From positions 124,001-188,000 of the IMG/VR virus record IMGVR_UViG_3300029911_000001: a stretch of DNA of 64,000 bases. One strand, 5' to 3'. Of this stretch, positions 21,636 through 44,743 are shown piece after piece (positions within the stretch are counted from its first letter, which is position 1; each line of letters opens with the position of its first letter). The notes below the pieces were generated by a model, which was not told where the DNA came from, ran no database searches, and saw only the letters and a list, made by a program, of their open reading frames with translations. The position numbers and the translations under genes are program-made.

Positions 21636-21648
21636 TGAGGAAACAAGT

Positions 21649-22009: not shown

Positions 22010-22014
22010 TGTTT

Positions 22015-22091: not shown

Positions 22092-22096
22092 AGTGT

Positions 22097-22200: not shown

Positions 22201-22271
22201 GTTTCAAATGTTGCAGCACGGTTTCAGTGAGTCCTGAAATGGCTGAAGGTTGGAGTAAGCTGATTGAATCT

Positions 22272-22346
22272 ACACCCGTAGCTCAGAGATAGAGCGTCTC
22301 CTTGACGTGGAGAGGGTCGGGGGTTTAATTCCCTCCGGGTGTACCA
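22272..22346 (+). tRNA. tRNA-Val(GAC)
   Basis: TCTCC-TT-GAC-GT-GGAGA; CCA. Confidence 0.92.
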
Positions 22347-22374
22347 AAGCAGGAGAGTTTGAAGTTACCAGAGT

Positions 22375-22432
22375 CGGGATGTAGCTCAGTGGTAGAGCCT
22401 AAAAGTCGCAGGTTCGATTCCTGCCTTTCCTA
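22375..22432 (+). pseudogene. tRNA-like unit lacking the anticodon arm
   Basis: Canonical D arm GCTC-AGTGGTA-GAGC joined by CTAAAAGTC to canonical T arm GCAGG-TTCGATT-CCTGC; weak acceptor stem. Confidence 0.7.
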
Positions 22433-22644
22433 TACGACGCTCTGGTGGACTGAAAGGCGGGAAGCGTATCGTGCTCGTATTCACATTGCGCGTACCGCCC
22501 AAGTTTATTAATGATGAGTTTCAAGTTCGAGAGTTGGAACCAGCAGCGGAACATATAGCAGCCCTCACAGCTATCGCGTGCTAGGTAAGGGCAAGGACGA
22601 AGAGGCAGCATGGAAAGATGCTGTCCGTCGCAAGAAACAGATTT

Positions 22645-22723
22645 GGGGCAAGGGACTGCCGGGGGTGGTCACCTCATTCGCAATGAGGAATTCAGCGGGG
22701 TTCAAGTCCCCGTTGCTCCACCA
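22645..22723 (+). tRNA. tRNA-Ala(CGC), atypical D arm
   Basis: CCTCA-TT-CGC-AA-TGAGG; GGGGCAA/TTGCTCC with G3.U70; CCA. Confidence 0.85.
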
Positions 22724-22731
22724 AAAGTTTC

Positions 22732-22806
22732 GGGGTTATAGCTCAGAGGGAGAGCACCGCATTTGCAATGCGGGGGTCGAGATTTCAAAATTCTCTAACT
22801 CCACCA
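22732..22806 (+). tRNA. tRNA-Ala(UGC), second copy
   Basis: CCGCA-TT-TGC-AA-TGCGG; G3.U70; CCA. Confidence 0.88.
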
Positions 22807-22826
22807 CTTTATTAGTCAAAAGTTTC

Positions 22827-22904
22827 GGGCGGTCTGGAATAAGAGTTTCAGACAGGCTGCACATAGAGGCAGAAGGGTGAGTTCGAATCCCTTCACGTCC
22901 ACCA
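22827..22904 (+). ncRNA. Degenerate tRNA-like unit with Ala-type acceptor end
   Basis: GGGCG/CGTCC-A-CCA (G3.U70); GTTCGAAT in an enlarged T-loop; anticodon unresolved. Confidence 0.45.
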
Positions 22905-22921
22905 ATTTTGAGGTTGATTGA

Positions 22922-23179
22922 ATGAAGTTCACACGTCGTCAGTTCTTCGCAGGGCTCCCGGTATTCATCATGCCGGGGTGGATGAAGGCGATAGCCTCAT
23001 GGTTCCAGCCTGAGGTCGCCGTAGTAAAGGCTCCTCTAATCAAGGGCTCGACCCAACTAAATGATGTCCTGCCAAAGCGTGTGATGGTACCAACGTTCGA
23101 AATAGTTTCGTGTCCGACAATCTTGCTCAAGGAAATCAAGGAGCGTAGGTTCAGGATACAAAGTGGGCCGGTAGCATAA
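22922..23179 (+). CDS. Small protein with twin-arginine-like N-terminus
   Basis: MKFTRRQFFAG; RBS GAGG. Confidence 0.55.
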   Translation: MKFTRRQFFAGLPVFIMPGWMKAIASWFQPEVAVVKAPLIKGSTQLNDVLPKRVMVPTFEIVSCPTILLKEIKERRFRIQSGPVA

Positions 23180-23243
23180 TGGGAATGCACATTCCTTGCG
23201 GCGAGTAACCGCACCCACCCGGCTCCAGTTTGAAAGGAGCTTC

Positions 23244-23426
23244 ATGGCTAAGTACACAGTACGTAACAAGGAAGGGCACCTTCTCGGAAGGACTGATAGC
23301 CCTGAGGTTTTGGTAGAAGAGATTTGCGAAGTATGTGAGAAGCAAGGAATTATTTACCACGTACACCCCGAGTCGGAAGAGCATAAAGGGTCTCCTAGCT
23401 TTCGACCAATGAAGTTTAGCAGATGA
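23244..23426 (+). CDS. Small hypothetical protein
   Basis: ATG with RBS AAGGAG. Confidence 0.55.
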   Translation: MAKYTVRNKEGHLLGRTDSPEVLVEEICEVCEKQGIIYHVHPESEEHKGSPSFRPMKFSR

Positions 23427-23452
23427 AATGGAAAAGCACGAAGGTTAAGTTT

Positions 23453-23527
23453 GGCCCTGTCCTCCAACGGTCAGGAGAGTGGGTTCTCAACCCGACAACA
23501 AGGGTTCAACTCCCTTCAGGGCCACCA
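23453..23527 (+). tRNA. tRNA-Glu(CUC)
   Basis: Loop TT-CTC-AA; GGCCCTG/CAGGGCC; CCA. Confidence 0.88.
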
Positions 23528-23534
23528 GTTTTAT

Positions 23535-23609
23535 GGCGCATTCGTTCATTGGTTAGGACCGGTGTTTTTCAAGCACCAGAAGAGGTTTCGATTACCTCAT
23601 GCGCTACCA
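23535..23609 (+). tRNA. tRNA-Glu(UUC)
   Basis: GGTGT-TT-TTC-AA-GCACC; CCA. Confidence 0.88.
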
Positions 23610-23992
23610 ATTTCGCTGGGAGGTCGGTGTGGACTCAGGCGACTCGCTGCAACCGAGTAGGCGTTGCGGGAGATATGCGAGGGAAAGATTGATCTTCCTG
23701 TCAGAACATCGGCAGTTGAAGTGGGCACCGGGGCTGAAGGGTCATCGCTAGAACAGGGTGGCCCTTCAGCAAAGTCTGCCGACCATTTGATACAATAGCT
23801 GGATGAGACGAGGCTACCAATGAACTGTACTAAGTGTGGTGAATCAGCCCTCGGAGTAGCTCTTGATGGACTACCTTACTGTCATCGCACAGAGTGTATT
23901 TTATGGAAGGTGGAATTGCAACGGTATCGGGATTTGCAAGCTCTCCCTTTTCCAGCACCGCAGCGACCGTTTGCAAAAAGTTTGGTGTTTAA

Positions 23993-24068
23993 GCGGGATT
24001 AGCTCAGTTGGTAGAGCGTTTCCTTCCCAAGGAAAATGTCGCGGGTTCGAGTCCCGCATCCCGCTCCA
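23993..24068 (+). tRNA. tRNA-Gly(CCC)
   Basis: TTTCC-TT-CCC-AA-GGAAA; canonical; CCA. Confidence 0.95.
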
Positions 24069-27743: not shown

Positions 27744-28730
27744 CTATCGCAGGTATACTGCAAACACAATATCGTCGTCTCCTGTGGAGACTTCCATTGT
27801 CACTGTGTTTGTTGAGAGGGTGTAGTATCCTATTTCCCCCACCCCCACTCCACCAATTACGGGAATCTGAAACACACCATTCAAGTAGAGACCTATCATA
27901 AGGGTAGGGCTATAGGTCAAAGTGAACACGGTACCCGGACTAGACCCTGATGGGGGCTCAACTACAAGCTTCGCGGCGATTGCGGCGCTCAGGTTAGATT
28001 CCGTAACAAGGGAGCCTATATCACTTAGGTCAGTTGAGGCTAGTTGTCCTACGGTAATAGCCCCACCCACCGTTGACTGTTTTAGAACTTGGTGAGGACC
28101 TCCCGTCCCTGCCAAGTTGGAACTCGTCCCCCCTTGGTCTACGGCACAGGTTCCGCTTAGATCACTGAAAGACGATGCTTCACCTCCTGCGGTATAGAAC
28201 GAGGGGGTGAAGGGGAACGTGAGATACCCGTCCAAGGAACCTACTACTTGAGAGATAAAGCCCAGCGTCTGGACGAAATTAGGGGATGTTGGTTTTACCT
28301 TAGTCACACTTCCGGCTGTAGTTGGACTAAGGTAGACGGGTGACCCTATATCACTCGGGGAGAACCCAGATACAAACTCCATCGTCGTAAGCCCCTGTGT
28401 ACAAACGACAATAAAATCCCCAGCTTCTGCTGGAGCAGTAACAAACCCCAACGCGGGAAGGTTACTCAGGCTTGAGGCACTAGCTAATTGAGCGTATACC
28501 CCGCTAATAGAGTCGATGGTAGTGTAGTAGAGGTTTACTAGGCTCCCAGAAGGGAGGTCAGTGGCGGCGATAGCTGACACTGGTGCTCCAGTAAAACTAG
28601 AGTCAATTTCACCATTGACATTCAGTACAACCGGTGACCCCTCACCCCCTGCTCCTGTGTACGACGACACACCGGGGGTTATATCAATGAGCCCCGTAAC
28701 TTGATTAAAAACGCAAATTTGTGTAGCCAT
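27744..28730 (-). CDS. Probable virion decoration/fibre-associated protein
   Basis: Gly/Ser/Thr-rich beta-type sequence; ALGFV...G.PVYLS...G.VTK motif of cement/fibre-like proteins. Confidence 0.5.
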   Translation of the reverse strand: MATQICVFNQVTGLIDITPGVSSYTGAGGEGSPVVLNVNGEIDSSFTGAPVSAIAATDLPSGSLVNLYYTTIDSISGVYAQLASASSLSNLPALGFVTAPAEAGDFIVVCTQGLTTMEFVSGFSPSDIGSPVYLSPTTAGSVTKVKPTSPNFVQTLGFISQVVGSLDGYLTFPFTPSFYTAGGEASSFSDLSGTCAVDQGGTSSNLAGTGGPHQVLKQSTVGGAITVGQLASTDLSDIGSLVTESNLSAAIAAKLVVEPPSGSSPGTVFTLTYSPTLMIGLYLNGVFQIPVIGGVGVGEIGYYTLSTNTVTMEVSTGDDDIVFAVYLR

Positions 28731-28854
28731 CGGTCGTATCCTCGTCTCAGGTATCCCAAATAAGGGGTCTATCCATGAGCTTGATAGCCAAAATTATTTT
28801 GTGACTACCGACGCCTATAAGTATAGGGGCATCTCGCCTCGTTATGGGAGTCAC

Positions 28855-31800
28855 ATGTTTAAGTTGTTTCAAAAATTCGGGATTCTTGTTACCTTGGTTT
28901 TCGCCTTTGGTTGCTCTATAGGACAGGCACAAATAAATCCAGAACAAATTCGGTGGCCTCTGCTCACAGGGACAGGTGTTCCTACCCTCTCCTGCTCGTC
29001 CGTTAACTATGGGCAACCTTACCAGAACACAGCAGTTACACCGAATACTTACTACACATGCGGCACAGATGGTTGGCAGATACGTATATCCCTCGGGCCT
29101 AAAGTGAATGCGACGAGCGTAGCCTTTGGCGCGGCATCATCCTGCGCAAACACTGCTGATCCAACAATGACACTGGATTCAACCTGCGCTATTAGGGCGG
29201 CGATTGCTTACGTTTATGCCCACGGTGCCAATGGAGTCTACCCAGCATTATATCTACCCGTTGGCAACTACAAGACTACCGCTGAGATACGAATACCCTG
29301 CGACGTATGGCTGGAGGGTGACGGGGTAACGGCAACCGTTATTTCCTTGACCAACAATGCAGCAAACGGAATTACCGTGTACGGCGATAACTCCGGCTCC
29401 GGTGATGCGTGGCAGTGCGTCGGCGGAATGCATGGTCTTGGTATTACCGCCATTGGCGCTCATCTTTACACCGCCGACCAATTGGAGATTGTCGGGTCTA
29501 CTGCATACACATTGAGGGATGTACTGGTACAGGGCGGCGGTGGCAGAGGTATCAATGTCACTGGCGGCTCAGAACGCTTGGACGCTGAAAATATCTTCAT
29601 CAACACAGTTCGCTGGCCTATGCTGTGGAAAGGTAACGAGAACCATCTCCGAAAATTGAACATTGCAGACCCCGGAAACTCCTCGGACAACTGGTGCTTT
29701 GCACAGGGAAATTGCGTTACCACACACACTTTCCCCAACTTTAATTGGAGCCTTCAGCAGACTCTAGTTTCAGCGGTTGGCTCAGGAACCCGCGCCTCCT
29801 ATGTTGTCACTGACACGGGGGGTGCCGGTTCTACTTTGGGTGTCTCCCCCATCGGCATTGGGCAATGGTTCACTGTTTCTGGAGTCACTGGAACGACCGG
29901 ACTGAATGGTGTGTTTCAGGTCGCATCGGCGACGAATGGCACCGTGACAGGTGGCTGCGCCGCGAACAGGTGCTACACCATTACTGCGGTAAATTCGACA
30001 AGTGGAACCGGCACCGGACTTGGCTCCGCAACGTTCCAACCGACTATTGTTGCAGATAGAAACGCCGCCGTTTATGCCTCCGGCTCAACATTCAAGATTG
30101 ATGGAGGATCGATCAAATCGCTAGAGTCATCTGGATGCTTTGATATTGGTAGCACGTTCGGAAGCACAATCGCTAACATTTACTGCGAGGGCTATCCGGT
30201 GAACGGCCAGCCCCACGTAAACTCATCAGTTACTGAGGGTAACCTCCCTGCTGAAACAACTACAACTGCCAGTCTTGGAGCTTCTGCGACAACCGTCACC
30301 GTGGTGGATACCTCGTGGTTCCCTAACTATGTGCAGACGGCATCTGACGCTAATAGTGCAGATATAATACAAGGAAAAATTGCCCCTTGCGACTACATCG
30401 AGCCACCAAACACCGGCTACAATGTGCAATCTGCCTGCGCTCCAACTGGCGTGTTGAAAGGCATGTGGGAAGCAGTCCAGATAACGATGACATCGACAGG
30501 TGCCCTGCTACAGCGGTGCCAGTCTGGGTCTACGGTAACGTGTACTGCCTATACGAGCGGACCTGTATGGCCTTCTGGCTCTCTGATTGCCAACGGACCT
30601 CCGGGAAACTATTCCTACCTCAAACTGGACACCGACCATTTTAATGCAATTGATGAGCCGGGGGCTAACTGGGCTGCGTATTGCAACGATCAATCATCTT
30701 TTATATGCGGAGAAATCATTGGTGGTGGTATTGAGAATGGTCTCACAACCGGGAGTTCTGGGTCTACGCTGGGAAGGCTTCAGCAAGCCCAAATCTTGTT
30801 CGACAATGATGAGTGGTGGGGCGGTATAAATTCGGCATCGCCGGGAAGTTCCTACTATGGCGACGGAACAATCAAAGCTGTAGGGCTTGGCATCGTCGCG
30901 CAAGCTACGGGAAGCACGTTCGGAAATGGGTATGCGGCGGATTCAAATGCTGTCAATGGGAAATTCACCGATGGCACAGCCAATAACGTCAATGACTCAG
31001 CACCCGGATTCGTCAATGTTCAATCGGCTGATACCTATTACCCTTCCTCTGAGTACAACAATCTCAGCAATGGCATGATCTTCAGCGCTTCGAGCGGTCT
31101 CTTCCGTAAAAACTTGAATGCCTACGGAGACCCCATTACTGGAAACAATCCGGGCGCGGGGTCGAATGGCTACAACAATGGAGCAGAGGTCGCAAACTCG
31201 ACTTGCACTTACGATACTCCGCTGACTTCAGGTACGCACTCGCTGAATCGCTGGTGTTTCGTGGGGGGACCAGGCAATAGTGGCACAGCAGCCGGTGTTG
31301 AATATGACACCTACAATACCGGGTCGTCAATATGGGTGACTCAGTTCAAAATAGACGGCACAGGAGCCATCACATTTGGGGGAGTTCCGACCTTTACAGA
31401 TGCAATTTTCCAAGCCCTACACATGGCTGCACCGGGGGATAAGGTTTATTTGGGCGATCCCGGCAACTGGCTTGAACGCGACAACACACTAAGCGGGGCA
31501 ACTCATTTTGCCGCACCGGGGTTTGACTTTGACAATAATGGTTCAGGTTCTCCACTAAACATCATGGACGGGGCTGGTGGCACATATCACGGGTACCTCT
31601 GCCTCAACTTGGATTCGTGTATCTCTAGAAATGGAAGCTCTAATCAGTTTCACTTTGGAAGCGGAGCCTATGGAGCCAGTGACGGAGCACTCTTTGCAGC
31701 CAACGCCACCTTCGGCGGCACGCTAACCGCGTTGAACGGGAGTATAAACTCCGTGATGAATGGAGCTACAGCAGAGTTTGGGATGAGTTCGTATCTCACA

Positions 31801-34800
31801 GCACCGTGTACTGCGACCGTAGCCAACACATCGCACGTTGTCACTATTCTCAGCGGATGCACGTTCCCTAGCCCGATGACAGGGTACGTGTTTCATTTGG
31901 GCGACAGTGTGTCAGGTTCCTTGGATGGCACACTGACCTATCTGTCGCCCACGACCGCCACGATGAATGTCGCGTCTACTTGGACTTCCAGCAGCGGGAT
32001 CAGCGCGACCGTGAACGCCGGAGGTACTGGCTATGCGGTCGGTGATACCGGGACAGTCAATGGCGGAAACAGCAACGCACGGTATTGGGTGCAATCCGTT
32101 TCGGGAGGTGTAGTCACTGGAATTTACATGAACAGCGGTGGGTCTGGATATACAAGTGCAACGGGAGTTGCGACTGCAACGGGAGGCATTCAGCCCGGAA
32201 GCGGCACGGGCCTTACACTCAATACCACCGCAGCATTGACACCGGAAACGCTCTATTTTGGCCCTGATAATTGCACATCGGCAAATGCTTGGTTCGCCGC
32301 CGCAAGTGGAGGAAGAGGTACTCTATCTCCGGGTGTTTATATGTCGTCCTGTCCACTTCTCCAAGGCAGTGCAAATTCATTTTTCATCGAGGGTACAACC
32401 AAGACAAATACCATCCTTGTCGATGCAGACTCTTCATCGCACCCTGATTTTATCGGAGTCGGGAATAACGGCTCCAACTCTGTTTCACACATCGCTAATA
32501 TAAGCGCGGTCGGAAACAAGAATACCACCCGTGGCTGCATCTCGATCTTTGGCCCAACGGATCACACATCGCAAGACTTCTCCTGCTATGATTCGGGCGC
32601 AGCATCCCTATACCTGAACAATGCCGTTTCAGCCAATATAAATCAGTTCTCTTCCGCCCCCTCGAATACTTCGATTGTGCAGCCGGTGAATTGCGTCAAC
32701 TACGTAGCCAGTGGCCCGTCTGAGTTTCACAGTTTGACGTGCGAAGGTGCGTCTGGGTACTCGATCAACAATACTGGACAAATGACGATCACCGCCAGCC
32801 AGATTGATTATGGGTTGCAAGGCCAACTTTACAACAGCAGTACTGGTTACGTGTACATCAACGGCGGGACTCTACTTGGATGTGAGCTGACCACATGCGC
32901 TAATGGAGTGACCAATTATGGCGTAGTAAATGTTGAGGATGGAGGGGTGTCAGTCTCCTATCACGGATATTCTGGCTCGATCTTCTATGGCTCGAATGTT
33001 GCGCTCGATGGTCTAAACTCTACCTTTGTGTTTGATTCTGGGTCGCTATGCACAATCGCCGGGTTAAGACTTGGACTAAATGGGATCACAGACAATGCAG
33101 GATGCGCCATCGCCGGACCAACTGTAAATGAGAGCACCGGAGTTGGGACTGTAGACTATCCAACGTCGCAATCGTTGCAAACGGGAATTTACGGCAATCA
33201 ACTAATAATGGCTTCCGGTCCTCTCGCCTTTAGATATGGCTGCGCTACTTATGGTAATTCTTCATGCAACGTGACTCCAATGGCACAGGTGCCGCTTGCC
33301 GCATCGACCACATGGGCGATTCAATTTCAAGGGCAGTGGAACACTGACACTACAGTTCCATTCATCAAGACCGTGACTTATGCCAGTCCTACATTCACGG
33401 TTGCAGGACAGACGGTAACATGCAAGCAGGCTACCACGAATTTCAATACCACTCGCTCCGGTCAGTTTGTCTGCTATATTGCTCCTTCATCCATCGGTCA
33501 GGTTGGATTTACGGGGTCGTGGATTATCTATCCGAACGGAATGAATACGCCGACAGGACTCGGTGCCCCTTATTGTGCTGCCGGGATATGCAACTCTACT
33601 GGCACAGCGTGGGGTTCCAGTTATGGAATCGTGGGCTCAGGGTCAAATGTAGTTCTGGCAACGTCTCCAACCCTCCAAAATAGTTTGACGGTCACTAATG
33701 CAGGTAACGTGTCTTTGACACTGACAGATACAGCCACTGGCACCATCAGCAACACCGAGTTGCTAGGAGATGGTTCGGTAAATCACTACGACGACACAGC
33801 AGTTGTCAATTACTTTGATTATGCTAGTGGCGTTTCCAACCTCTATCTATCCACTAATCAAACTACCACGACGTTTCCAAATACGTTCAATGCATTCCCG
33901 CATGGGCTTTATGCGGGAAGCACTAACCAGTTCCAGATTGATGCCAGTGGCAACGTGACAGCACCCTCTGTCAATGTGTCAGCCACAAACTACCCATTAT
34001 TTGGTAACATCCCCGGAGTCGGGAATGTGTGGTCCGCTGTGAATAGTAACTGCAAACTTTCGCAGTTGTCTGGCGGGTCGGGTGGTTACACTGATGGAGG
34101 GTACTGCTCCACACAACAATTCCTTAGCACTGTTCCCGGGTGGAACGATCTTGGAACTATTGGTGCTTATCTTCCAGCCGCGCAGAGTATTACGATGAAC
34201 AACTACTCAACTGGAATTGAGTCAGTGTTGGCTATTCAAGTAAACTCCCCGGCGGGAGGAGACCAGAATGGCATCGACTTCCAAGATCACGTTCGCAACG
34301 CTCTGAATCATGGAGGAGATCAAGGCCAGTCTGACCTTCAAATTCAGTCCTACGAGGGAGGAGAACCCACAGGGACAGTAACATCAGTCACACCTGTAGC
34401 TTCTGGAGTTCAAGTTGCACTAACATGCTCTGCGAACTGTGACCAGATGGGAATCATGTCTGGCCCACTGGTCGATATGACAGAGGCAATTCCTGCCACG
34501 GTTACTTACGTCAGCACATCGGGCGGTTTGGCTACGGTAACGTCCAGCAATACTGTTCCCGTTTCGACATCGGGTACGCTCGCCAGTGCTGCCAATGCTC
34601 AATGGTCAAACGCGACAACTTATCCTTCGGGCATCATCGTTCTATACATAGGAGCGGCGTACTACCAAAGTTTGCAAAACACAAACGTTGGGCATGAGCC
34701 GGATACCTCTCCTAGTTGGTGGACACTAGTATCTCCGCCTAGCGGGAGGCTATCCTCGAACATTGTAACGTGGAACATGAACACCGGCACTACTCTGACA

Positions 34801-37275
34801 GCCGGGGAGCTATGCGGTATCGGTGCAGGAGATGCGTCCGCTCTATATGAGATAACGCAGCTGACCTCAGTAGGCACGCCCTCCGGTGGAGTGCAGAGTG
34901 TGACCGCAAATCTCTACAATTCGCACGCCATTGGAGAACCTTTCTCCTGCGGAGGCATGGTTGGTTGGCTGGCGATCTACAAGAATTATGAACCCAACGG
35001 CCAGATGTACGCTGACAACATATACGCTTCGACTGGAGTGAACACACTCATTATCGGGCATCGGGCGGCTAACTTCTACACCAACTCTCTCCCCTCGACC
35101 TTTGCGGAGCCGGTAGCAATAGTTCCCGGTGCAGACATTGTTGGCGTGACCAATCCATCCACTGGAAATCCAGATGGAGGCTTTGCATATACTGAACCAG
35201 CACCATCGGGGACGTACACCGTTGGTCACAGCATCGTGAACCTGAACAACATTTCGGCTACGTATACAAACAGTTTTATGGACACAAATATCAATAACCC
35301 ATTTGCGGAGCGTAATACTCATGCCAATATCTTCCAAGGCAATTTTCTTGGCGGAGGTGCAAATGTGAACACTGGGTTCAACTACAACTTTACCGGCAAT
35401 GGCCAGCCTTCCTACGATCTAAATTATCTGGGCAACGGTGCTAATATCACCGCGTGGTCTATCAGCGGGGCTAACGTCGCCACATTCACCGGAAACAACA
35501 ACTTTTTGGCTGGTCAGAAATTCCGTCTCGGAGGCTTCGGTACATCCACTTTCTTCAACGGCCAAGTGGTGACTATTCTTTCCTCTGGTCTTTCGAGCAC
35601 ACAGTTCGAGGCTAACTTCACACATTCTAGCGGCTCTGGTACGGAGGCAGGAAATGCGCAAGGACTGTATCTGCCTCCATACTTTGACTATGTGGAAGGC
35701 CCGATTTCGGCTGGGCTTGTTCTTTCCGGCTGGCCGACTGGCCCTGCTTATGGACAGATCGGTGTAGCTGGAAACAGTTGCGGAACGTTCGTACTTTGTA
35801 TCGGACCTAGTGGATTTGGTCCTGATTCGCTTGCTGGAGGGATCGGGCATCTATTCCATGCATACACCGGCGAAGAGTTGGATGTGAACACCAATACACA
35901 CACCTTCAATTTTGTTGGAAATATCAACCTAACCGGAGCACTGACCTACTCAGGTCCAATTGTCAATACTTACAGGCAGACCCAAAATGGAGGAGCTTAC
36001 CTTGCTGGGTGGGCGGGTGATAACGGATGCCCGGCTGGTCCGTACAACGTCATGGGTCTGGAGTTCGGAGTTCCTCCGACATTCGCCACTGTGGGTAAGG
36101 ATAAGTGCGGTGCGCTCAACATTGTGAATGGCGAGGCTCCTACTGAGTTCCGAATGGGCGACGAGTACGGTTATGGTGCTGGTGTAATGGGGCACGTAAG
36201 TTTCAACTCTTCAGACCACGGGCCAAACTATTTTTCTAGCTGGCTGCAATCATGGATTTCCAGCGGGTCTTACGGGACTGATTACAGTCCCAACACGGTT
36301 CCTTATCAGTTTTTCCAGCAAGCAGTAGGCACGAGCACTCCGGTCAACTATGCATGGGCGGATGAGTGGCACGTCTTCAACACACTCAAAGGATTCAAGA
36401 CCCAACAGGTACAGCCTTTGCAGGCTATTCCAGTAGCGACAGGTAGCACAACAGGTGGAACTCTTGCGGCTAACCAGTACTCCTTCGTCATAACTGGCAC
36501 GACCACAACAGGAGAAACTACAGCCAGCCAGACTGCCAACTGCGTAACCACAACTGGCAGCACGAGCAGCATCAGCCTGACGTGGACAGCGATGACTGGG
36601 GCGACAGGATACAAGGTCTACCCTGCCGTTGGAAACTGTGCTGGAGGGCAGGCTGGTACCGCTAATGCTGCTTTCACCGTCTCCGGCACGAGCTACACAT
36701 TCACAGCCTTCACCTCTGGCTCAGTCGTCCCGCCGACTGAGAATACGACGGGGTATGGGATCGATGCCAGTGGCAACGCAACGGTGGCGAGTCTATCTGC
36801 TACCAGCAATATCACAGACTCCGCCCTTACCCCCGGCAACTGTGTGCAGGCGGGTACGGGTGGGCTGCTGATTGATACTGGGGGTCCTTGCTATCCATCT
36901 ACGTATAAAGTAGCTAGGTACTGGAGTATCCCCAGTGCAACATTCTCGACTGGAACATTCCTTGGACCAATCTATTTCTACGAATTTCCGATTGGTTCAA
37001 ATACACCTGTGACAACTCCTCTAATGGCGTCACTAACAGGCACAATTAGCTGCTCAGTGGCTCCTACTATTGGGTTATACGACCTAGGAACCTCCGCAAC
37101 CACAGCATTGGGTTCTTCCGCGCTAGTCACCACTTTAGCAACTGGAACAAGTGATGGAGCATACACGGCTAGTGCGAGTTTTCTAGGGTTCCACGGTCAG
37201 CACTACTATCGCGTGGCATTCACGGCTGGCTCCTGTACGACTGCCCCGCAGATTGATTTTACCGTAGACTGGTAG
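28855..37275 (+). CDS. Giant (about 2806 aa) signal-peptide-bearing multidomain beta-helix/glycan-interacting protein
   Basis: ATG 28855 with RBS GGGAG; MFKLFQKFGILVTLVFAFGCSIGQA-Q; two pectate-lyase-3-like starts (DSTCAIRAAI...LYLPVGNY; DNCTSANAW...GTLSPGVY); CBM5/12-like module (WSNATTY...YYQSL...EPDTSPSWW); Fn3-like module near the C-terminus. Confidence 0.75.
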   Translation: MFKLFQKFGILVTLVFAFGCSIGQAQINPEQIRWPLLTGTGVPTLSCSSVNYGQPYQNTAVTPNTYYTCGTDGWQIRISLGPKVNATSVAFGAASSCANTADPTMTLDSTCAIRAAIAYVYAHGANGVYPALYLPVGNYKTTAEIRIPCDVWLEGDGVTATVISLTNNAANGITVYGDNSGSGDAWQCVGGMHGLGITAIGAHLYTADQLEIVGSTAYTLRDVLVQGGGGRGINVTGGSERLDAENIFINTVRWPMLWKGNENHLRKLNIADPGNSSDNWCFAQGNCVTTHTFPNFNWSLQQTLVSAVGSGTRASYVVTDTGGAGSTLGVSPIGIGQWFTVSGVTGTTGLNGVFQVASATNGTVTGGCAANRCYTITAVNSTSGTGTGLGSATFQPTIVADRNAAVYASGSTFKIDGGSIKSLESSGCFDIGSTFGSTIANIYCEGYPVNGQPHVNSSVTEGNLPAETTTTASLGASATTVTVVDTSWFPNYVQTASDANSADIIQGKIAPCDYIEPPNTGYNVQSACAPTGVLKGMWEAVQITMTSTGALLQRCQSGSTVTCTAYTSGPVWPSGSLIANGPPGNYSYLKLDTDHFNAIDEPGANWAAYCNDQSSFICGEIIGGGIENGLTTGSSGSTLGRLQQAQILFDNDEWWGGINSASPGSSYYGDGTIKAVGLGIVAQATGSTFGNGYAADSNAVNGKFTDGTANNVNDSAPGFVNVQSADTYYPSSEYNNLSNGMIFSASSGLFRKNLNAYGDPITGNNPGAGSNGYNNGAEVANSTCTYDTPLTSGTHSLNRWCFVGGPGNSGTAAGVEYDTYNTGSSIWVTQFKIDGTGAITFGGVPTFTDAIFQALHMAAPGDKVYLGDPGNWLERDNTLSGATHFAAPGFDFDNNGSGSPLNIMDGAGGTYHGYLCLNLDSCISRNGSSNQFHFGSGAYGASDGALFAANATFGGTLTALNGSINSVMNGATAEFGMSSYLTAPCTATVANTSHVVTILSGCTFPSPMTGYVFHLGDSVSGSLDGTLTYLSPTTATMNVASTWTSSSGISATVNAGGTGYAVGDTGTVNGGNSNARYWVQSVSGGVVTGIYMNSGGSGYTSATGVATATGGIQPGSGTGLTLNTTAALTPETLYFGPDNCTSANAWFAAASGGRGTLSPGVYMSSCPLLQGSANSFFIEGTTKTNTILVDADSSSHPDFIGVGNNGSNSVSHIANISAVGNKNTTRGCISIFGPTDHTSQDFSCYDSGAASLYLNNAVSANINQFSSAPSNTSIVQPVNCVNYVASGPSEFHSLTCEGASGYSINNTGQMTITASQIDYGLQGQLYNSSTGYVYINGGTLLGCELTTCANGVTNYGVVNVEDGGVSVSYHGYSGSIFYGSNVALDGLNSTFVFDSGSLCTIAGLRLGLNGITDNAGCAIAGPTVNESTGVGTVDYPTSQSLQTGIYGNQLIMASGPLAFRYGCATYGNSSCNVTPMAQVPLAASTTWAIQFQGQWNTDTTVPFIKTVTYASPTFTVAGQTVTCKQATTNFNTTRSGQFVCYIAPSSIGQVGFTGSWIIYPNGMNTPTGLGAPYCAAGICNSTGTAWGSSYGIVGSGSNVVLATSPTLQNSLTVTNAGNVSLTLTDTATGTISNTELLGDGSVNHYDDTAVVNYFDYASGVSNLYLSTNQTTTTFPNTFNAFPHGLYAGSTNQFQIDASGNVTAPSVNVSATNYPLFGNIPGVGNVWSAVNSNCKLSQLSGGSGGYTDGGYCSTQQFLSTVPGWNDLGTIGAYLPAAQSITMNNYSTGIESVLAIQVNSPAGGDQNGIDFQDHVRNALNHGGDQGQSDLQIQSYEGGEPTGTVTSVTPVASGVQVALTCSANCDQMGIMSGPLVDMTEAIPATVTYVSTSGGLATVTSSNTVPVSTSGTLASAANAQWSNATTYPSGIIVLYIGAAYYQSLQNTNVGHEPDTSPSWWTLVSPPSGRLSSNIVTWNMNTGTTLTAGELCGIGAGDASALYEITQLTSVGTPSGGVQSVTANLYNSHAIGEPFSCGGMVGWLAIYKNYEPNGQMYADNIYASTGVNTLIIGHRAANFYTNSLPSTFAEPVAIVPGADIVGVTNPSTGNPDGGFAYTEPAPSGTYTVGHSIVNLNNISATYTNSFMDTNINNPFAERNTHANIFQGNFLGGGANVNTGFNYNFTGNGQPSYDLNYLGNGANITAWSISGANVATFTGNNNFLAGQKFRLGGFGTSTFFNGQVVTILSSGLSSTQFEANFTHSSGSGTEAGNAQGLYLPPYFDYVEGPISAGLVLSGWPTGPAYGQIGVAGNSCGTFVLCIGPSGFGPDSLAGGIGHLFHAYTGEELDVNTNTHTFNFVGNINLTGALTYSGPIVNTYRQTQNGGAYLAGWAGDNGCPAGPYNVMGLEFGVPPTFATVGKDKCGALNIVNGEAPTEFRMGDEYGYGAGVMGHVSFNSSDHGPNYFSSWLQSWISSGSYGTDYSPNTVPYQFFQQAVGTSTPVNYAWADEWHVFNTLKGFKTQQVQPLQAIPVATGSTTGGTLAANQYSFVITGTTTTGETTASQTANCVTTTGSTSSISLTWTAMTGATGYKVYPAVGNCAGGQAGTANAAFTVSGTSYTFTAFTSGSVVPPTENTTGYGIDASGNATVASLSATSNITDSALTPGNCVQAGTGGLLIDTGGPCYPSTYKVARYWSIPSATFSTGTFLGPIYFYEFPIGSNTPVTTPLMASLTGTISCSVAPTIGLYDLGTSATTALGSSALVTTLATGTSDGAYTASASFLGFHGQHYYRVAFTAGSCTTAPQIDFTVDW

Positions 37276-39960: not shown

Positions 39961-40797
39961 ATGGGTTGTCTGAATTCTGATGAGAGCTTCGAACACTGGT
40001 TTGGCAACATCCACCTGAGCGGTCTGTGCAATCGCTCGTGCTACTTCTGCATCGGCCAGCACATGATGGACTTGGACAGCTACGACGTGCTGAAGACGTG
40101 GCCGCTGCCCAACCTCGATGAGTTCTCCACCCAGTTGGCGAAGAGACCGGTGAAGGAAATCTGCCTGACCGGCACCAACACCGACCCGCTGCTCTATGCT
40201 CACCACCCGGAGTTGACGACCTACCTGCGTGCGAAGTTCCCCGGTGTGCCTCTGGCTATCCGCACGAACGCAGCGGCCTACACGCCTGAGCTACTGTCGC
40301 TCTACGACCGTGCCAGCTTTTCTATCAGCAGCTTCAACCCGGACATCTATGTGAAGATGATGGGACAGGGCAAGCCGCCCAACATCGAACGCATCATGGC
40401 GAACCACCCGGACATGAGCCTAAAGGTCAACGTCGTGTTGGGGCCGGAGAACCTTGGCGACGACCTTACGAAGACGCTGAACTATCTCTCTTCACTCGGC
40501 ATGAAGCGTGTGAACCTGCGTGAGCCCTACGGCCAGCCTCACATCGGCGACCCGCTGGTACACTCGCCGCTGCACAAGGTAGTCTTTGGTATGCCCTGCC
40601 ACCTTGTTGGCGACATGGAAGTTACATACTGGGACGTACACTACGTTGAAGTAGAGAGCGTCAACCTCTATGCCAGCGGACGTGTCAGCGAGACCTACCC
40701 AGTGACACTGGGTCACTCTCCCAAGGGTGAAGTACATGACCAAGGCTTCTACCCGACCTCCGGGCGTATACGTGAACAATGGGTGATTCTTAAGTAA
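39961..40797 (+). CDS. Radical SAM protein
   Basis: CNRSCYFC (CxxxCxxC). Confidence 0.85.
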   Translation: MGCLNSDESFEHWFGNIHLSGLCNRSCYFCIGQHMMDLDSYDVLKTWPLPNLDEFSTQLAKRPVKEICLTGTNTDPLLYAHHPELTTYLRAKFPGVPLAIRTNAAAYTPELLSLYDRASFSISSFNPDIYVKMMGQGKPPNIERIMANHPDMSLKVNVVLGPENLGDDLTKTLNYLSSLGMKRVNLREPYGQPHIGDPLVHSPLHKVVFGMPCHLVGDMEVTYWDVHYVEVESVNLYASGRVSETYPVTLGHSPKGEVHDQGFYPTSGRIREQWVILK

Positions 40798-41093
40798 TGC
40801 GTAAGACTTCCACGCCTCGATACCCTCAACCCCGCGACGTTGCCCCGGTGAAGAGGGCTCTTGAACAGTACATCCCCATGGAGGCACCGCTGCAATACTG
40901 TATGCGGTTCTCCATCAAGAACACGCCCAACTTTCGGCTGCAATCACAGACGAATGAAATTGTGTGGTACGTAGATGTGTATAAGGGTCACTACTACCAT
41001 GTAACCATAAACAGTTCGACGGAAGTATGCCGGACTATCCCCGCGTTGGTGACCTATATGTGGCGACGGCTAGGGGTTACACCTAAACGATGA
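40797..41093 (+). CDS. Hypothetical protein
   Basis: TAATG coupling. Confidence 0.55.
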   Translation: MRKTSTPRYPQPRDVAPVKRALEQYIPMEAPLQYCMRFSIKNTPNFRLQSQTNEIVWYVDVYKGHYYHVTINSSTEVCRTIPALVTYMWRRLGVTPKR

Positions 41094-41112
41094 AAGCGTC
41101 GTATTACACATC

Positions 41113-41811
41113 ATGGAGCCAATAGTACAACTGAAGACCCTCGATGACTTGAAGAAGGTGCTCTACCTTCAAAAGACCATCACCGCACAAGCCAAGAATG
41201 AACTACTTTCCGTTGTTAACGAGAAGGTCCTCGACCCGGAGGCCATCGGCGACGATGCTGTCAAACAGATACGTGAGTTCATGGAGGAAGAGAGAAAGGT
41301 ACTCACGAAGTATGCCAAGTATCCTACCCTTACCGAGTATCAGTTGATGCCCAGTTCCTATGACGGCTACAAGTGGGGAGCCACCTTTGGCGTAACCCTG
41401 CTCATCGGAGAACTCATTTTCGAACAGTTGAATAAAGCATATCCTCACTTCACTCACGTCTCTCGTCACCTCTTCCTCATCCTTCTCAGTGAACTCGACA
41501 GTCCTCAGCATGAGTACCTCATTGAACCTTTGGAAAAGGCTCTGCGTATTAAGGTCACCAGCGAGGGACAGGAAATCACCCCGGAGCAACGCAAGGAGTA
41601 CATCCGAGGCATGGTCAATCAGTTCGTGGAGACCACGGTCGCCCTGTGCGAAGGCTATGGTTTGATGAAGGTGAAGAAGGGCGGAGTGGTTATCACCCCG
41701 GTAGGCAAGAGGGTTCTGCTGCATCTAGCAGACGCGGCTAGGTTTGTGGAGGATATGACTAAGGCCCACAACAAGTTCCAGATTTCAAAGCCTAAACTAT
41801 CCATGGGATGA
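41113..41811 (+). CDS. Hypothetical protein, possible C-terminal winged helix
   Basis: YGLMKVKKGGVVITPVGKRVL. Confidence 0.6.
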   Translation: MEPIVQLKTLDDLKKVLYLQKTITAQAKNELLSVVNEKVLDPEAIGDDAVKQIREFMEEERKVLTKYAKYPTLTEYQLMPSSYDGYKWGATFGVTLLIGELIFEQLNKAYPHFTHVSRHLFLILLSELDSPQHEYLIEPLEKALRIKVTSEGQEITPEQRKEYIRGMVNQFVETTVALCEGYGLMKVKKGGVVITPVGKRVLLHLADAARFVEDMTKAHNKFQISKPKLSMG

Positions 41812-41823
41812 GCGGGAGTACCT

Positions 41824-42630
41824 TTGCCAGACATCAAGAAAAAGAAGGACAACAAATTCAGACCGGGCCGACTGGTGTCAGAATTTAACCCTGTCCCGGT
41901 TCTGTTGTCTCAAAAGACTTACAATCGTTACAATATTCTTGTAGGCGAAGACAGACCACAGGAGCGTCTTGCTGAGCAGGTACTCGGAGTCTACTGTCAA
42001 CAGGCTGATACCCTCAGCGATTCCGACATGCTGGTGGATGACCAGCCCAAGTTGTTCCGGGTGTTTTCCGCCAAACACGTCACTCTCTCGCCTCAGGTTA
42101 AGGATATGACATCGTTCTGGTCACTCGACCCTATCGAGAAGGGCTCAGCCGGGGCGAACGCTATTGTACGGTACGCCGCTACTCTCCTCGACGTGGACAA
42201 GCCGTCCAAGGACGTTGTAGAGAGGCTGGCAGACCACTTGGCTACGTCAGGTACCATCGAGGACATCCGCGTAGCTCTGTGGACGGCTGTGTGGCATCTA
42301 ACCGGACCTCCAATACCTGAAGGTAAGCGGTGGCCGCAGCCATGGGAAGACCGAGTACTGTGGTTCCAGATTCCCGGAGTACAGCCGGAGTATCGTCTGA
42401 ACAGCCTGTACCTAGACCTTACAGCGTACACCCTGTCAATTGCTGATGAAGAATCTACCCTCAAGAAGGCTGGGTTGCGTATTTCCCCATCTAAGCTCAA
42501 GTTCTTCAAAAAACTGAAGTTAGACTACACTAAAGTGCATGACACCATCGAGCTACTTGACCTCTGGCGCACAAAGCGGACTGACCCTTTTATTTGTGCT
42601 TTTCGTATCTCTAACCTATGGAAACCGTAG
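41824..42630 (+). CDS. Hypothetical protein
   Basis: 268 aa ORF. Confidence 0.6.
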   Translation: MPDIKKKKDNKFRPGRLVSEFNPVPVLLSQKTYNRYNILVGEDRPQERLAEQVLGVYCQQADTLSDSDMLVDDQPKLFRVFSAKHVTLSPQVKDMTSFWSLDPIEKGSAGANAIVRYAATLLDVDKPSKDVVERLADHLATSGTIEDIRVALWTAVWHLTGPPIPEGKRWPQPWEDRVLWFQIPGVQPEYRLNSLYLDLTAYTLSIADEESTLKKAGLRISPSKLKFFKKLKLDYTKVHDTIELLDLWRTKRTDPFICAFRISNLWKP

Positions 42631-42668
42631 TATTATAGAGGATGGGTCAACTGACCTTTGGAGATGTT

Positions 42669-43292
42669 ATGAAGCGTATCGCTTTGATGTTTGCAGCAGT
42701 TCTTACCCTTGCAGCAATGACCGTAGGCTCCGCCTCAGCACAGAATGGTGTGTTCGCACCGTATGCAACCGCTGGCGTTAGTGTTCAGAGTGGTGCTGTC
42801 GTAAACAAGACCAACCCGAACTTCGCAGTAGGTGGTGGTATCGAGTCCAGCAGCAAGTATCTCTTGCTCGACGCCAATACGACCTACAATACCGCCAACA
42901 ACGTCGTGACCAGCAACGGCTATACTGTCAACACTCAGGCAAGCGCATACCTCAAGTTGACCAAGGTTCTGGTCGGTGTCGGAGTGGACTCATCCATCAC
43001 CAACCTTACCCCCACCACGGCAGAGAAGGCGTTAAAGTCAGTATCCACTCAGAGCTTCCACCCGTTCATCGGCGTCGGCTACCAAACCTCGAAGCTGCGT
43101 GTTGAGGGAGCCTACCTGCTCCCGGCGAAGGATGCGGTCAACAACGAGCGTATCGCAAACGGCATCGCAGAGGTCTTCCTCGCCAAGCATGTTCGGGCGA
43201 CTGGATCATTGGTTCTCGACAGCGCGGTATCTACCGGTAACCCCCGTCAGTTGTCGGTCGGTGCCGGTGTTGGGCTGAAGTTTGTTCTGTAA
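42669..43292 (+). CDS. Outer-membrane beta-barrel-like protein
   Basis: Signal peptide MKRIALMFAAVLTLAAMTVGSASA-Q; alternating beta strands; C-terminal GAGVGLKFVL. Confidence 0.65.
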   Translation: MKRIALMFAAVLTLAAMTVGSASAQNGVFAPYATAGVSVQSGAVVNKTNPNFAVGGGIESSSKYLLLDANTTYNTANNVVTSNGYTVNTQASAYLKLTKVLVGVGVDSSITNLTPTTAEKALKSVSTQSFHPFIGVGYQTSKLRVEGAYLLPAKDAVNNERIANGIAEVFLAKHVRATGSLVLDSAVSTGNPRQLSVGAGVGLKFVL

Positions 43293-43322
43293 CTAGAAGA
43301 CCAGAAATACATATCGTGGTTG

Positions 43323-43356
43323 AAACGCTCACCCTTCGGGGTGAGCGTTTTGTTTT
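43323..43356 (+). terminator. Intrinsic terminator
   Basis: AAACGCTCACCC-TTCG-GGGTGAGCGTTT plus T tract. Confidence 0.9.
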
Positions 43357-43422
43357 GCCATAAATACTGATGAAATCTCACTATCAAACTAATGGTATAA
43401 GCAGTCTTTTTGAGGGATTAGA

Positions 43423-43755
43423 ATGGCAAATTCGCGTGTAGGTCGGGAACTATTGGTAGCTCGGGTGCAAAAGACCCTTAACTTATCAACCAAGAAAGAA
43501 GCGGAGGAGTTACTTAAGAAGATCATCGTCTGCATTGAAGAGACCTTGATTGACAACCTCGACAACGATAAGTTCTCCATGAAACTAAATAGCTTCGGCA
43601 AGTTTAGCATTCATCATAAACCCGGCATTCTGAGAAATATCCCCTTTACGGGGGAGACAAAGATGACCGAGGACAAACGTAAGGTACGATTTGTGGCACT
43701 GGGGAACCTTCGTAGATTAGAGAGGAAAGAGGGTGCCCGGAGTACCTCAGCATAG
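43423..43755 (+). CDS. HU/IHF-family DNA-binding protein
   Basis: LNSFGKFSI...RNIPFTGE...VRFVA. Confidence 0.85.
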   Translation: MANSRVGRELLVARVQKTLNLSTKKEAEELLKKIIVCIEETLIDNLDNDKFSMKLNSFGKFSIHHKPGILRNIPFTGETKMTEDKRKVRFVALGNLRRLERKEGARSTSA

Positions 43756-43888
43756 GTTGGGCTATACAAAGAAATGTTTTAAGTATGCGGTTCAAACTGT
43801 GCTTTACGACAGTATTAAAACCGTAGAGCAGTAAAGACACTCGCAAATAATAAACTAATCCACTCGAAACGAAAGGTATCACAGTCAT

Positions 43889-44716: not shown

Positions 44717-44743
44717 TCCCTAAACCTTTTCAACTAACACAGA

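Follow-up and report, generated by a model that had tools for sequence, protein, structure and literature searches.

Phage tailspikes and capsule depolymerases, such as CBA120 TSP2 (6w4q/5w6p), Sf6 TSP (2vbk), a Klebsiella phage depolymerase (6tku) and ORF18 of Geobacillus virus E2 (7chu), have a right-handed beta-helix body and a modular build, in which a conserved N-terminal part is combined with variable glycan-specific modules and with accessory CBM- and Ig/Fn3-like domains. These proteins have no signal peptide and few cysteines, and they assemble in the cytoplasm. Secreted bacterial polysaccharide enzymes, such as acidobacterial PF12708+PF24146 proteins, Vibrio cholerae RbmB (9ozl) and Pantoea WceF (PMC7949094), associate a signal peptide with a beta-helix, but are cellular genes of about 850-1,200 aa in chromosomal contexts. 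In adaptor-plus-tailspike systems (the K1E/K1-5/SP6 adaptor, the branched tailspikes of CBA120/ViI), a small protein with an anchor fold of the T7-gp17-N/tailspike-N type is apparently paired with receptor-binding proteins sharing a short conserved N-terminal docking part, both partners being cytoplasmic. Outside the tailed phages, the filamentous-phage adsorption protein pIII is likely to be a Sec-exported, disulfide-bonded host-recognition protein, and the archaeal virus ATV seems to complete its virion appendages outside the cytoplasm, although these belong to other virus realms with other assembly routes, and have no homology to the protein described here.

We analysed a window of 64,000 nucleotides (positions 124,001 to 188,000 of the IMG/VR record IMGVR_UViG_3300029911_000001), from a jumbo phage of peat-soil Acidobacteria. 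It contains one intact gene for a 2,806-residue protein (Table 1), which a sequence-only reading had described as a glycan-interacting protein with tailspike-like beta-helix modules, a CBM5/12-like module, an Fn3-like module and many cysteines behind a Sec-type signal peptide. Our analysis confirms this observation. Compared with the tailspikes listed above, the protein has a signal of the cleavable type and 28 cysteine pairs, is 3 to 5 times longer, and shows 15% sequence identity or less. Compared with the secreted bacterial enzymes, it has in addition a phage N-terminal module, a second beta-helix-like module, a fibre-like stretch and an anchor-domain partner gene.

Table 1. Features of the gene and of its divergent neighbour (window coordinates)
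Feature	Position	Strand	Residues	Basis
Shine-Dalgarno-like GGGAG, 4 nt before the ATG	28846..28850	+		Read directly from the sequence
Whole coding sequence, 2,806 aa plus stop	28855..37275	+	1-2806	At least 99% identical in independent peat metagenomes; contigs from four other runs show 5 substitutions and no indels over 5.9 kb
Sec/SPase-I-type signal peptide (n: K3, K7; h: F8-G19; c: C20-A25), predicted cleavage between A25 and Q26	28855..28929	+	1-25	Sequence features, family alignment
N-module, conserved phage-specific domain with two invariant Cys (C47, C69)	28930..29094	+	26-80	Family alignment, distribution
Module A, predicted right-handed beta-helix of the pectate-lyase/tailspike type with C-terminal subdomains	29152..31389	+	~100-845	Homologues at 30-44% identity, AF2 model, Foldseek and VIA matches
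~85-aa domain, found singly or repeated in many other proteins	31972..32244	+	1040-1130	45-65% identity to other proteins
Module B, second beta-helix-like module	32245..33546	+	~1131-1564	Homologues and language-model look-alikes
CBM5/12-like module	34597..34728	+	1915-1958	Profile similarity, PHROG hits
Stretch similar to tail fibre protein gp18 of Tunturiibacter phage Tunturi_3	34603..35178	+	1917-2108	tblastn: 29% identity, E 2e-4
~70-aa mobile domain, shared with an insert in a phage tail sheath protein and with the 1,794-aa exported giant of the same genome	35443..35652	+	2197-2266	Sequence searches
Fn3-like module	36472..36774	+	~2540-2640	Profile similarity
C-terminal region with the last two Cys pairs	36775..37272	+	2641-2806	No relatives found
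Divergent neighbour gene, 328 aa, no signal peptide, 3 Cys; conserved partner of N-module genes	27744..28730	-		Synteny
C-terminal 'TL' domain of the neighbour, with the predicted fold of tailspike and tail-fibre N-terminal anchor domains	27750..27965	-	256-327 of the neighbour	HMM, AF2 model, BFVD and PDB matches

The open frame extends upstream to a GTG at 28801, but we reject this start: the JGI gene call and more than 40 homologues begin at the ATG, and the extra 18 residues are not conserved. The true start does not, therefore, lie downstream of the hydrophobic segment, which would have refuted the sequence-only reading. The presequence, judged on its classical features rather than by a trained predictor, has a positively charged n-region, an uncharged hydrophobic core and a c-region ending with G-Q-A, and it is the only strongly hydrophobic 19-residue window of the protein. 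Among 44 distinct presequences of the family (42 from other genes and 2 alternative-start versions of this one), 42 have K/R in the first 10 residues, 43 have a hydrophobic core and 37 have an A-Q junction. They vary in sequence while keeping this build, whereas the mature domain that follows is 50-65% identical across the family. F-A-F-G-C at residues 16-20 fits a loose lipobox by eye, but C20 has no counterpart in the 22 aligned homologues, and we reject a lipoprotein.

The protein has 57 cysteines, 56 of which are in the mature part, where they fall in 28 consecutive close pairs with alternating short and long gaps. The fraction of length in odd gaps is 0.18, a value reached by 0 of 200,000 permutations. 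In the 231-kb genome record, only the three signal-bearing giants show this pattern at that strength (0 of 5,000-200,000 permutations each), while every other ORF with about ten or more Cys gives p 0.04 or more. Three pairs (281/287, 610/618 and 784/801) are conserved across the signal-bearing homologues of module A, and in related loci, signal-bearing ORFs have 1.9% Cys against 0.6% in the rest. The 28 consecutive pairs independently support extracytoplasmic folding. No phage-encoded DsbA or signal peptidase was found in the 231-kb record, which is only part of a ~432-kb genome.

Module A matches Pfam PF12708 over aa 101-186 (E 5e-6), just below the curated cut-off (26.8 bits against 27), and there was no hit when the whole protein was scanned. 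However, two of its homologues carry PF12708, and the AF2 model of aa 26-870 (pLDDT 82.9) gives Z 20-22, with rmsd 2.6-4 over 256-337 residues, to tailspikes, alginate lyases and polygalacturonases; for the four tailspikes and depolymerases cited above, Z is 19-22. Module A is 33-44% identical to the closest of the acidobacterial proteins (22-44% across the set aligned), and retains 68 of 77 family-conserved columns, including all conserved D/E/K/R/H. Module B rests on homologues and look-alikes: one homologue is 43% identical over aa 1120-1405, another is 39% identical over aa 960-1564, and language-model look-alikes are viral proteins, PF12708 and DUF1565. The CBM5/12-like module does not pass the Pfam PF02839 cut-off (13.7 bits against 26.2, E 0.066), but a six-sequence profile hits solved domains (4nz1 at 5.4e-5, 1ed7, the 45-aa ChiA1 binding domain, at 1.1e-4 over residues 1-45, and 4tx8 at 4.4e-4), so that it resembles a CBM5/12 without being a proven member. 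Similarly, the Fn3-like module has no Pfam hit and a weak similarity to 1k85 (E 0.28), but a profile hits 3mpc at 9.3e-5 and 1k85 at 1.9e-4.

Other searches gave little. Megablast against phages found no match, a whole-length word search found only the protein itself plus one Fn3-like hit, and a scan of viral contigs with the whole protein found only identical copies. Word searches with aa 1130-1900 and 1880-2806 found nothing and only the 70-aa domain, respectively, and BLASTP of the C-terminal region with a Terriglobales-MAG protein showed nothing (E 2.4). Self-BLAST found no internal repeats, promoter and terminator scans were uninformative, and none of the RNA runs held the gene.

The N-module turned up in 38 viral contigs and in a single locus, itself phage-like, of 185,579 species genomes, and it is absent from the 50,697 GenBank phage records searched. 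It is always preceded by a signal peptide, and is 44-65% identical across proteins of 143-2,806 aa with unrelated bodies, as expected for a conserved attachment part with a variable distal part, although its own structure was modelled at low confidence. It usually lies just after baseplate or tail-fibre genes; in one locus it directly follows SLT, Dit-like, Pam3 plug, hub, Gp138_N and DUF2612 genes, and in two others two paralogues occur per phage. The gene in the window departs from this arrangement, since it lies among replication and nucleotide-metabolism genes, about 66 kb from Baseplate_J (86292-86792 of the 231-kb record), which could mean non-late expression. The sheath family PF04984 was not found in this partial record.

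A signal-less gene ending in a TL domain lies within two genes upstream of the N-module gene in 16 of 26 non-redundant loci. In the window it is the divergent neighbour, the only ORF with a TL domain in 231 kb (HMM hit 9.9e-23, the neighbour's own domain being among the sequences from which the HMM was built). AF2 gives a pLDDT above 90 for aa ~250-328 of the neighbour, but below 50 for its N-terminal 235 residues. The sequence-only reading had called this neighbour decoration-like; it is rather tail-fibre/adaptor-like. In contrast to the adaptor systems, the anchor fold is here at the C-terminus of the small protein and the partner carries an export signal, and binding between the two is not shown.

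A cultured relative is Tunturiibacter phage Tunturi_5 (PP885688.1), a jumbo myovirus whose major head protein is 72% identical to that of the present phage. Its structural-block genes gp337-gp342 are annotated as tail fibre (gp337, gp341 and gp342), virion structural or hypothetical proteins, and all six carry signal peptides, which are not mentioned in the describing paper. gp337 and gp341 show Cys pairing and, after the signal, carry the same N-terminal motif that signal-less small fibre proteins carry at residue 3. This motif differs from the N-module, which the Tunturi_5 proteins lack, and the six genes sit next to the head and tail genes. The tail-fibre labels are homology-based and are not backed by virion proteomics.

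The question arises as to what such a protein does. In the scenario we favour, the host Sec system exports the preprotein, signal peptidase I cuts after A25, and the ~290-kDa mature protein folds in the oxidising periplasm of an acidobacterial (Terriglobales) host, where 28 sequential disulfides lock its modules into a glycan-recognising and probably glycan-cleaving array. The N-module would play the part of the conserved N-terminal anchors of modular receptor-binding proteins: when holin and endolysin breach the envelope, it would dock the pre-oxidised fibre onto the finished particle, probably through the anchor-domain protein encoded next door. Export, disulfide formation and catalysis are inferred, and docking above all is an inference. 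We put a probability of about 0.85 on export and oxidative folding, and of about 0.45 on the whole scenario including virion attachment. Indeed, no tailed phage is known to add Sec-exported fibres, and export puts the protein in a different compartment from the assembling particles. Moreover, other exported Cys-rich proteins in the same tail modules lack the N-module, so export may serve a purpose unrelated to virion attachment. The sequence-only reading had left open a secreted depolymerase or adhesin, a periplasm-folded protein, and an appendage added outside the cytoplasm. Our data do not settle this, but shift weight toward the appendage, because of the phage-only N-terminal domain, its tail-fibre-locus position in other phages and its conserved anchor-domain neighbour.

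Alternatively, the protein may be exported and oxidised in the same way but never join the particle, accumulating in the periplasm or leaving by a host secretion system, and stripping or binding exopolysaccharide around the burst cell after lysis so that progeny escape and reach neighbours; the N-module would then bind a host envelope or matrix component. The signal peptide and disulfide pattern fit this equally well, the closest relatives of module A are cellular secreted enzymes, structural neighbours include secreted matrix lyases such as RbmB, the gene lies outside the structural block, and about 5% of soil prophage CAZymes have signal peptides (PMC13507307). However, a host-directed anchor would be expected on host proteins too, yet the N-module is almost confined to viral contigs, and neither the pairing with a signal-less anchor-fold gene nor the position directly after baseplate genes is explained. 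We consider this rival rather unlikely, though the strongest of those examined. A protein that stays on the envelope of the infected cell and destroys or masks the polysaccharide receptor, so as to block secondary adsorption and loss of progeny on debris, would fit the export signal, the glycan-active folds and the position among early or middle-type genes, and huge phages are now reported to encode many envelope-targeted proteins with signal peptides (bioRxiv 10.64898/2026.10.24.761521). Nevertheless, lipid anchoring is unlikely given that C20 is not conserved, no other membrane segment or known outer-membrane or cell-wall anchor was found, known exclusion proteins are small, and tail-module synteny in other phages is left unexplained, so that this scenario appears improbable.

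Still less likely is an auxiliary metabolic CAZyme, derived from the host and kept to boost the carbon supply of the infected cell. The habitat is peat, virus-encoded CAZymes in soils are widely discussed, and the cellular homologues sit next to GH9, melibiase and GH47 genes. But only module A has cellular relatives, while the N-module, the Tunturi_3 fibre-like stretch, the sheath-insert domain and the look-alikes are viral; the size and multiple binding modules are those of receptor-binding proteins, and the partner gene is an anchor-fold fibre protein. Equally unlikely is the possibility that the protein is not exported, its hydrophobic N-terminus being a structural element (for example, a trimer core or baseplate plug) of a cytoplasmically assembled fibre whose cysteines oxidise only after release. 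All characterised tailed-phage fibres assemble in the cytoplasm, and the family sits at fibre loci. However, the segment varies freely while keeping charge, hydrophobic-core length and a small-residue junction, which is the behaviour of signal peptides and not of structural cores. In addition, homologous fibre N-termini exist without it, the signal-less Tunturi_3 fibre that shares the CBM-like region is Cys-poor, and Cys pairing goes with signal peptides in this genome and in the related loci.

Textbook assembly of tailed phages is wholly cytoplasmic. A tentative extension of our scenario is that a lineage-spanning set of soil (Acidobacteriota) tailed phages makes its receptor-binding fibres by a two-compartment route, in which particles built in the cytoplasm and fibres oxidised in the periplasm meet only when lysis breaches the inner membrane, the N-module then snapping onto an anchor-domain protein already on the tail. 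This would be the first extracytoplasmic step in Caudoviricetes virion assembly. Annotation pipelines that label such genes 'tail fiber', or discard them as auxiliary-gene candidates, miss the export signal. If fibre-like proteins with real export signals and dozens of disulfides end up on virions, assembly can include a post-lysis, extracytoplasmic step, infectivity would then depend on the host Sec and Dsb machinery, and disulfide-hardened depolymerases may be an adaptation to acidic, enzyme-rich soils. If the proteins are free enzymes instead, they are very large phage-encoded exopolysaccharide-active proteins, released in peat where Acidobacteriota and their polymers matter for carbon turnover.

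The gene under study also lies on a 431,749-bp JGI metagenome contig, so the genome of the phage is probably about 430 kb, of which the IMG/VR virus record (G000) covers 231 kb. The window carries 16 tRNA genes, as is typical of jumbo phages, as well as replication and nucleotide-metabolism genes encoding a DnaB-like helicase, a helicase loader, a ribonucleotide reductase, a metallophosphoesterase and a second helicase. The open frame of interest, translated with genetic code table 11, has two possible starts, a GTG and an ATG. Three observations favor the ATG: the sequence GGGAG lies 4 nt upstream of it, the JGI gene call uses it, and every homologue begins at the equivalent point. On the basis of 5,901 letters of sequence, the gene is at least 99% identical, with no indels, in contigs of four further peat metagenome runs, and at least 24 peat runs hold it.

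Coordinates of the features discussed in the text (L-numbers are loci, in G000 or in related viral contigs)
Record or locus	Coordinates	Strand	Feature
Window	28801 (GTG) or 28855 (ATG)-37275	+	Open frame of the 2,806-residue protein
Window	27744-28730		Divergent neighbor, 328 aa, no signal peptide, 3 Cys
Window	696-5404	-	499-aa protein with a lytic transglycosylase-like domain (weak PHROG hits to internal virion and lytic tail proteins), next to a 1,068-aa ORF with no relatives; possibly a virion-associated wall-degrading pair
Window	12302-15724	+	Ribonucleotide reductase ORF, 1,140 aa, 30 Cys; matches the PHROG family in two separate stretches, which may mean an insertion or intein
Window	42642-43292 and 17977-18579	+	Two further small ORFs (216 and 200 aa) with signal-peptide-like or membrane-anchor-like N-termini by the heuristic census
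Window	19067-24068 and 63069-63255		Cluster of 14 tRNA genes (Val, Gly, Ala, Cys, Asp, Glu, several in duplicate) and two adjacent tRNA-Tyr genes
Window	39961-46146	+	Downstream genes including, by JGI precomputed Pfam hits, a radical SAM protein, an HU-like DNA-binding protein, a NUDIX hydrolase and an RNase T-like exonuclease
G000:C1 (outside the window; locus L006)	3194-13659	-	Block of four signal-bearing genes of 135, 1,794, 114 and 1,259 aa
G000:C1 (L006:11593-14064)	14593-17064	-	823-aa ORF homologous to the Tunturi_5 'tail protein' gp336, interrupted by an intein (Hint, intein splicing and LAGLIDADG domains); the two flanks match gp336 residues 22-154 and 154-213
G000:C1 (locus L049)	17100-23412		Three homing-endonuclease genes (two HNH, one GIY-YIG type) crowded around the major head protein gene
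G000	20818-21774		Major head protein gene
Tunturi_5, PP885688.1 (locus L050)	284114-298448		gp337-gp342
L021	9653-10257		CBM5/12-like motif between the signal peptide and the N-module
L043	7855-9918		Signal-bearing, Cys-rich protein(s) without the N-module
L016	8923-9936		Signal-bearing, Cys-rich protein(s) without the N-module
L033	9180-9974		Signal-bearing, Cys-rich protein(s) without the N-module
L038	14508-19492		Signal-bearing, Cys-rich protein(s) without the N-module

The protein is rich in G, T, S, A and N, and poor in K, R and E. Its only strongly hydrophobic 19-residue window is at the N-terminus, where residues 1-25 have the classical build of a signal peptide: K3 and K7, an uncharged core F8-G19, then a c-region ending G-Q-A before Q26. 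Pfam found nothing on the whole protein, but on 400-residue pieces it gave two hits, PF12708 at aa 101-186 (E 5e-6, 26.8 bits against a cut-off of 27) and CBM_5_12 at aa 1916-1956 (E 0.066). As word searches and family scans had left the protein open, a large profile search was made with aa 1-1200, and gave 415 relatives. Using 45 of these as an alignment, AlphaFold2 modeled aa 26-870 at pLDDT 82.9 and pTM 0.83. The body of this predicted structure is a right-handed beta-helix, with Z scores of 20-22 to Geobacillus virus E2 ORF18, CBA120 tailspike 2, a Klebsiella phage capsule depolymerase, the Sf6 tailspike, alginate lyases and epimerases, the Vibrio matrix lyase RbmB, and polygalacturonases.

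The evidence for the remaining modules is weaker but consistent. The second helix module (aa ~1131-1564) is supported only by two homologues and by language-model look-alikes, which are viral proteins, PF12708 and DUF1565. For the CBM-like stretch, a six-sequence profile hits solved CBM12 domains at 5e-5 to 1e-4, and for the Fn3-like stretch a profile hits 3mpc and 1k85 at about 1e-4. The domain assignments of the sequence-only reading (tailspike-like beta-helix modules, a CBM5/12-like module and an Fn3-like module) therefore all stand, at the level of 'like'.

Of the 57 cysteines, one is in the signal peptide, and the other 56 alternate short gaps (median 16 residues) with long gaps (median 63). 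The fraction of length in odd gaps is 0.18, a value that none of 200,000 random placements reached. This is the signature of sequential 1-2, 3-4 disulfides in extracytoplasmic proteins. Three of the pairs (281/287, 610/618 and 784/801) are conserved columns in the homologues of the first beta-helix module (module A), in which 68 of 77 conserved positions are kept, including every conserved acidic or basic residue. Interestingly, the gene is not a lone oddity: a crude ORF census of the 231-kb record found two more giants, of 1,794 and 1,259 aa, each with a signal peptide ending in A|Q and the same consecutive Cys pairing (0 of 5,000 permutations each). No other ORF with about ten or more Cys comes close, the lowest other value being p 0.04. 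One of the two giants carries a chitobiase/hexosaminidase C-terminal domain (CHB_HEX_C_1 / Fn3_assoc), and the other a CBM5/12-like motif.

The profile search also showed that aa 8-100 match the extreme N-termini of dozens of otherwise different proteins at 50-65% identity. Once aligned, the first 20-30 residues differ freely but keep charge, a hydrophobic core and an A-Q junction, whereas from Q26 on a domain of ~55 residues with two invariant Cys (C47 and C69), which we call the N-module, is conserved; it was modeled poorly. Among 44 distinct presequences (42 from other genes and 2 alternative-start versions of this one), 42 have K/R in the first ten residues, 43 have a hydrophobic core and 37 have 'AQ' at the junction. 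C20, which by eye could be a lipobox cysteine, is not conserved, and signal peptidase I is therefore the likelier enzyme.

A scan of one genome for each of 185,579 prokaryote species, which was not exhaustive and used a single peptide pattern, found one N-module locus, on a 48-kb contig of a Terriglobales MAG whose gene order looks like a phage tail module. The same alignment found 38 loci in IMG/VR, all of which have a signal peptide in front of the module. In one viral contig (L021), a CBM5/12-like motif precedes the module, and a second A-x-A-Q-like junction lies right before it, which suggests domain insertion at the mature N-terminus. A tblastn search of the whole protein against 50,697 GenBank phage records hit only the CBM-like and following region of a tail fibre of Tunturiibacter phage Tunturi_3, a fibre that has no signal peptide and few Cys. 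Within the limits of these scans, the module is therefore phage-specific and so far uncultured.

In other phages, N-module genes mostly sit where tail fibres sit. In locus L038, the genes just upstream encode an SLT transglycosylase, a Dit-like protein, a Pam3-type baseplate plug, a hub-like protein, a Gp138_N spike domain and DUF2612, and the same order of gene sizes recurs in L011, L015, L016, L034 and L043. Two loci have two N-module genes each. Many neighboring large ORFs in these loci also carry signal peptides and paired Cys, and additional signal-bearing, Cys-rich proteins without the N-module are interleaved with signal-less tail genes in the tail modules of small phages (L043, L016, L033 and L038). 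Median Cys content is 1.9% in signal-bearing ORFs against 0.6% in the rest, keeping in mind that these ORFs were called with a simple longest-ORF script and that the census of signal peptides is heuristic.

The divergent neighbor of the gene matched small ORFs lying immediately upstream of N-module genes in eight loci. An iterated HMM of its last ~65 residues finds this domain in a gene directly upstream, or within two genes upstream, of the N-module gene in 16 of 26 non-redundant viral loci, and in the 231-kb record the only ORF with the domain is this neighbor. AlphaFold2 models aa ~250-328 at pLDDT above 90, the rest of the protein remaining unmodeled. In BFVD, the predicted fold matches, at probability 1.0, the N-terminal domains of ViI/Det7/CBA120-type tailspikes, a T7-like tail fibre and a K1E adaptor. 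Among solved chains, it matches the CBA120 TSP4 N-terminal region at Z 8.1 (rmsd 1.9 over 63 residues), phage neck and tail proteins, and T7 gp17 N at Z 4.4. The Z values are middling, but nearly every top hit is a phage tail part, and the neighbor is therefore fibre/adaptor-like rather than a head decoration; the sequence-only reading had called it decoration-like.

The major head protein (PHROG 2522, E 3e-42) is 72% identical to that of Tunturiibacter phage Tunturi_5, a cultured 309-kb jumbo myovirus of an acidobacterium (PMC11924767); more distant relatives include Bacillus phage G. Together with the Terriglobales MAG locus, an Acidobacteria MAG homologue of module A and the peat source of the runs, this relationship points to a Terriglobales host in peat. 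Near the head gene is a syntenic slot of variable content. In this phage it holds four signal-bearing genes, including the two other giants; in the related jumbo-phage fragment L020, a PHROG tail-fibre-like 434-aa protein and a 1,132-aa N-module protein; and in Tunturi_5, gp337-gp342, annotated as tail fibre, virion structural or hypothetical protein. All six Tunturi_5 genes begin with a Sec-type signal peptide, and gp337 and gp341 show Cys pairing (p 0.0015 and 0.0005). Right after their signals, gp337 and gp341 carry the same motif that the signal-less small partner proteins carry at residue 3 (pairwise E values 7e-6 and 3e-4). The paper describing the Tunturi phages reports no proteomics and does not mention signal peptides.

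Nearly all homologues of the beta-helix module have signal peptides and about 2% Cys. Two that we looked up lie in ordinary bacterial chromosome contexts, one next to gyrA and ruvB and the other next to GH9 and melibiase genes; they carry PF12708, and one also carries K1-lyase_C. The probable enzymatic core is therefore of the kind the hosts themselves secrete. The fold and modular logic of the protein are those of phage tailspikes and adaptor-tailspike systems, while its export signal and inferred disulfides are those of secreted bacterial beta-helix enzymes such as RbmB or WceF (PMC7949094). Exported phage proteins are known, namely spanins, lipoprotein exclusion factors and pIII of filamentous phages, and recent surveys report envelope-directed proteins in huge phages (bioRxiv 10.64898/2026.10.24.761521) and signal peptides on about 5% of soil prophage CAZymes (PMC13507307). 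However, in the literature searched, we found no description of a family of signal-bearing, Cys-paired proteins at tail-fibre loci.

How could such a protein work? Judged by these sequence and family features, the preprotein is probably exported by Sec, cut after A25, and folded in the periplasm with 28 disulfides, a core scenario to which we give a probability of about 0.85. A trimer-sized product of about 290 kDa per chain is unlikely to cross the outer membrane unaided, and would therefore wait there until lysis. What happens next is less certain. The N-module is a phage-only domain with a conserved N-terminus and variable bodies, it is always coupled to a signal peptide, and it is paired with an anchor-fold, signal-less fibre gene, three points which argue that it is a docking part for a phage component. 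Alternatively, the protein may be exported and oxidized in the same way but act as a free matrix-degrading enzyme or adhesin; we consider this the main rival. Envelope remodeling or superinfection exclusion, an auxiliary metabolic CAZyme, or a non-functional signal appear less likely.

Our preferred model, tentative in the absence of virion proteomics, RNA or binding data (about 0.45), is that the protein attaches to the particle once the inner membrane is breached. Against it, there is no precedent in tailed phages, the gene lies among replication genes, about 66 kb from Baseplate_J, and exported neighbors without the N-module exist. Such a two-compartment assembly is the most novel possibility still open. 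It would give the phage a disulfide-hardened depolymerase/adhesin fibre.
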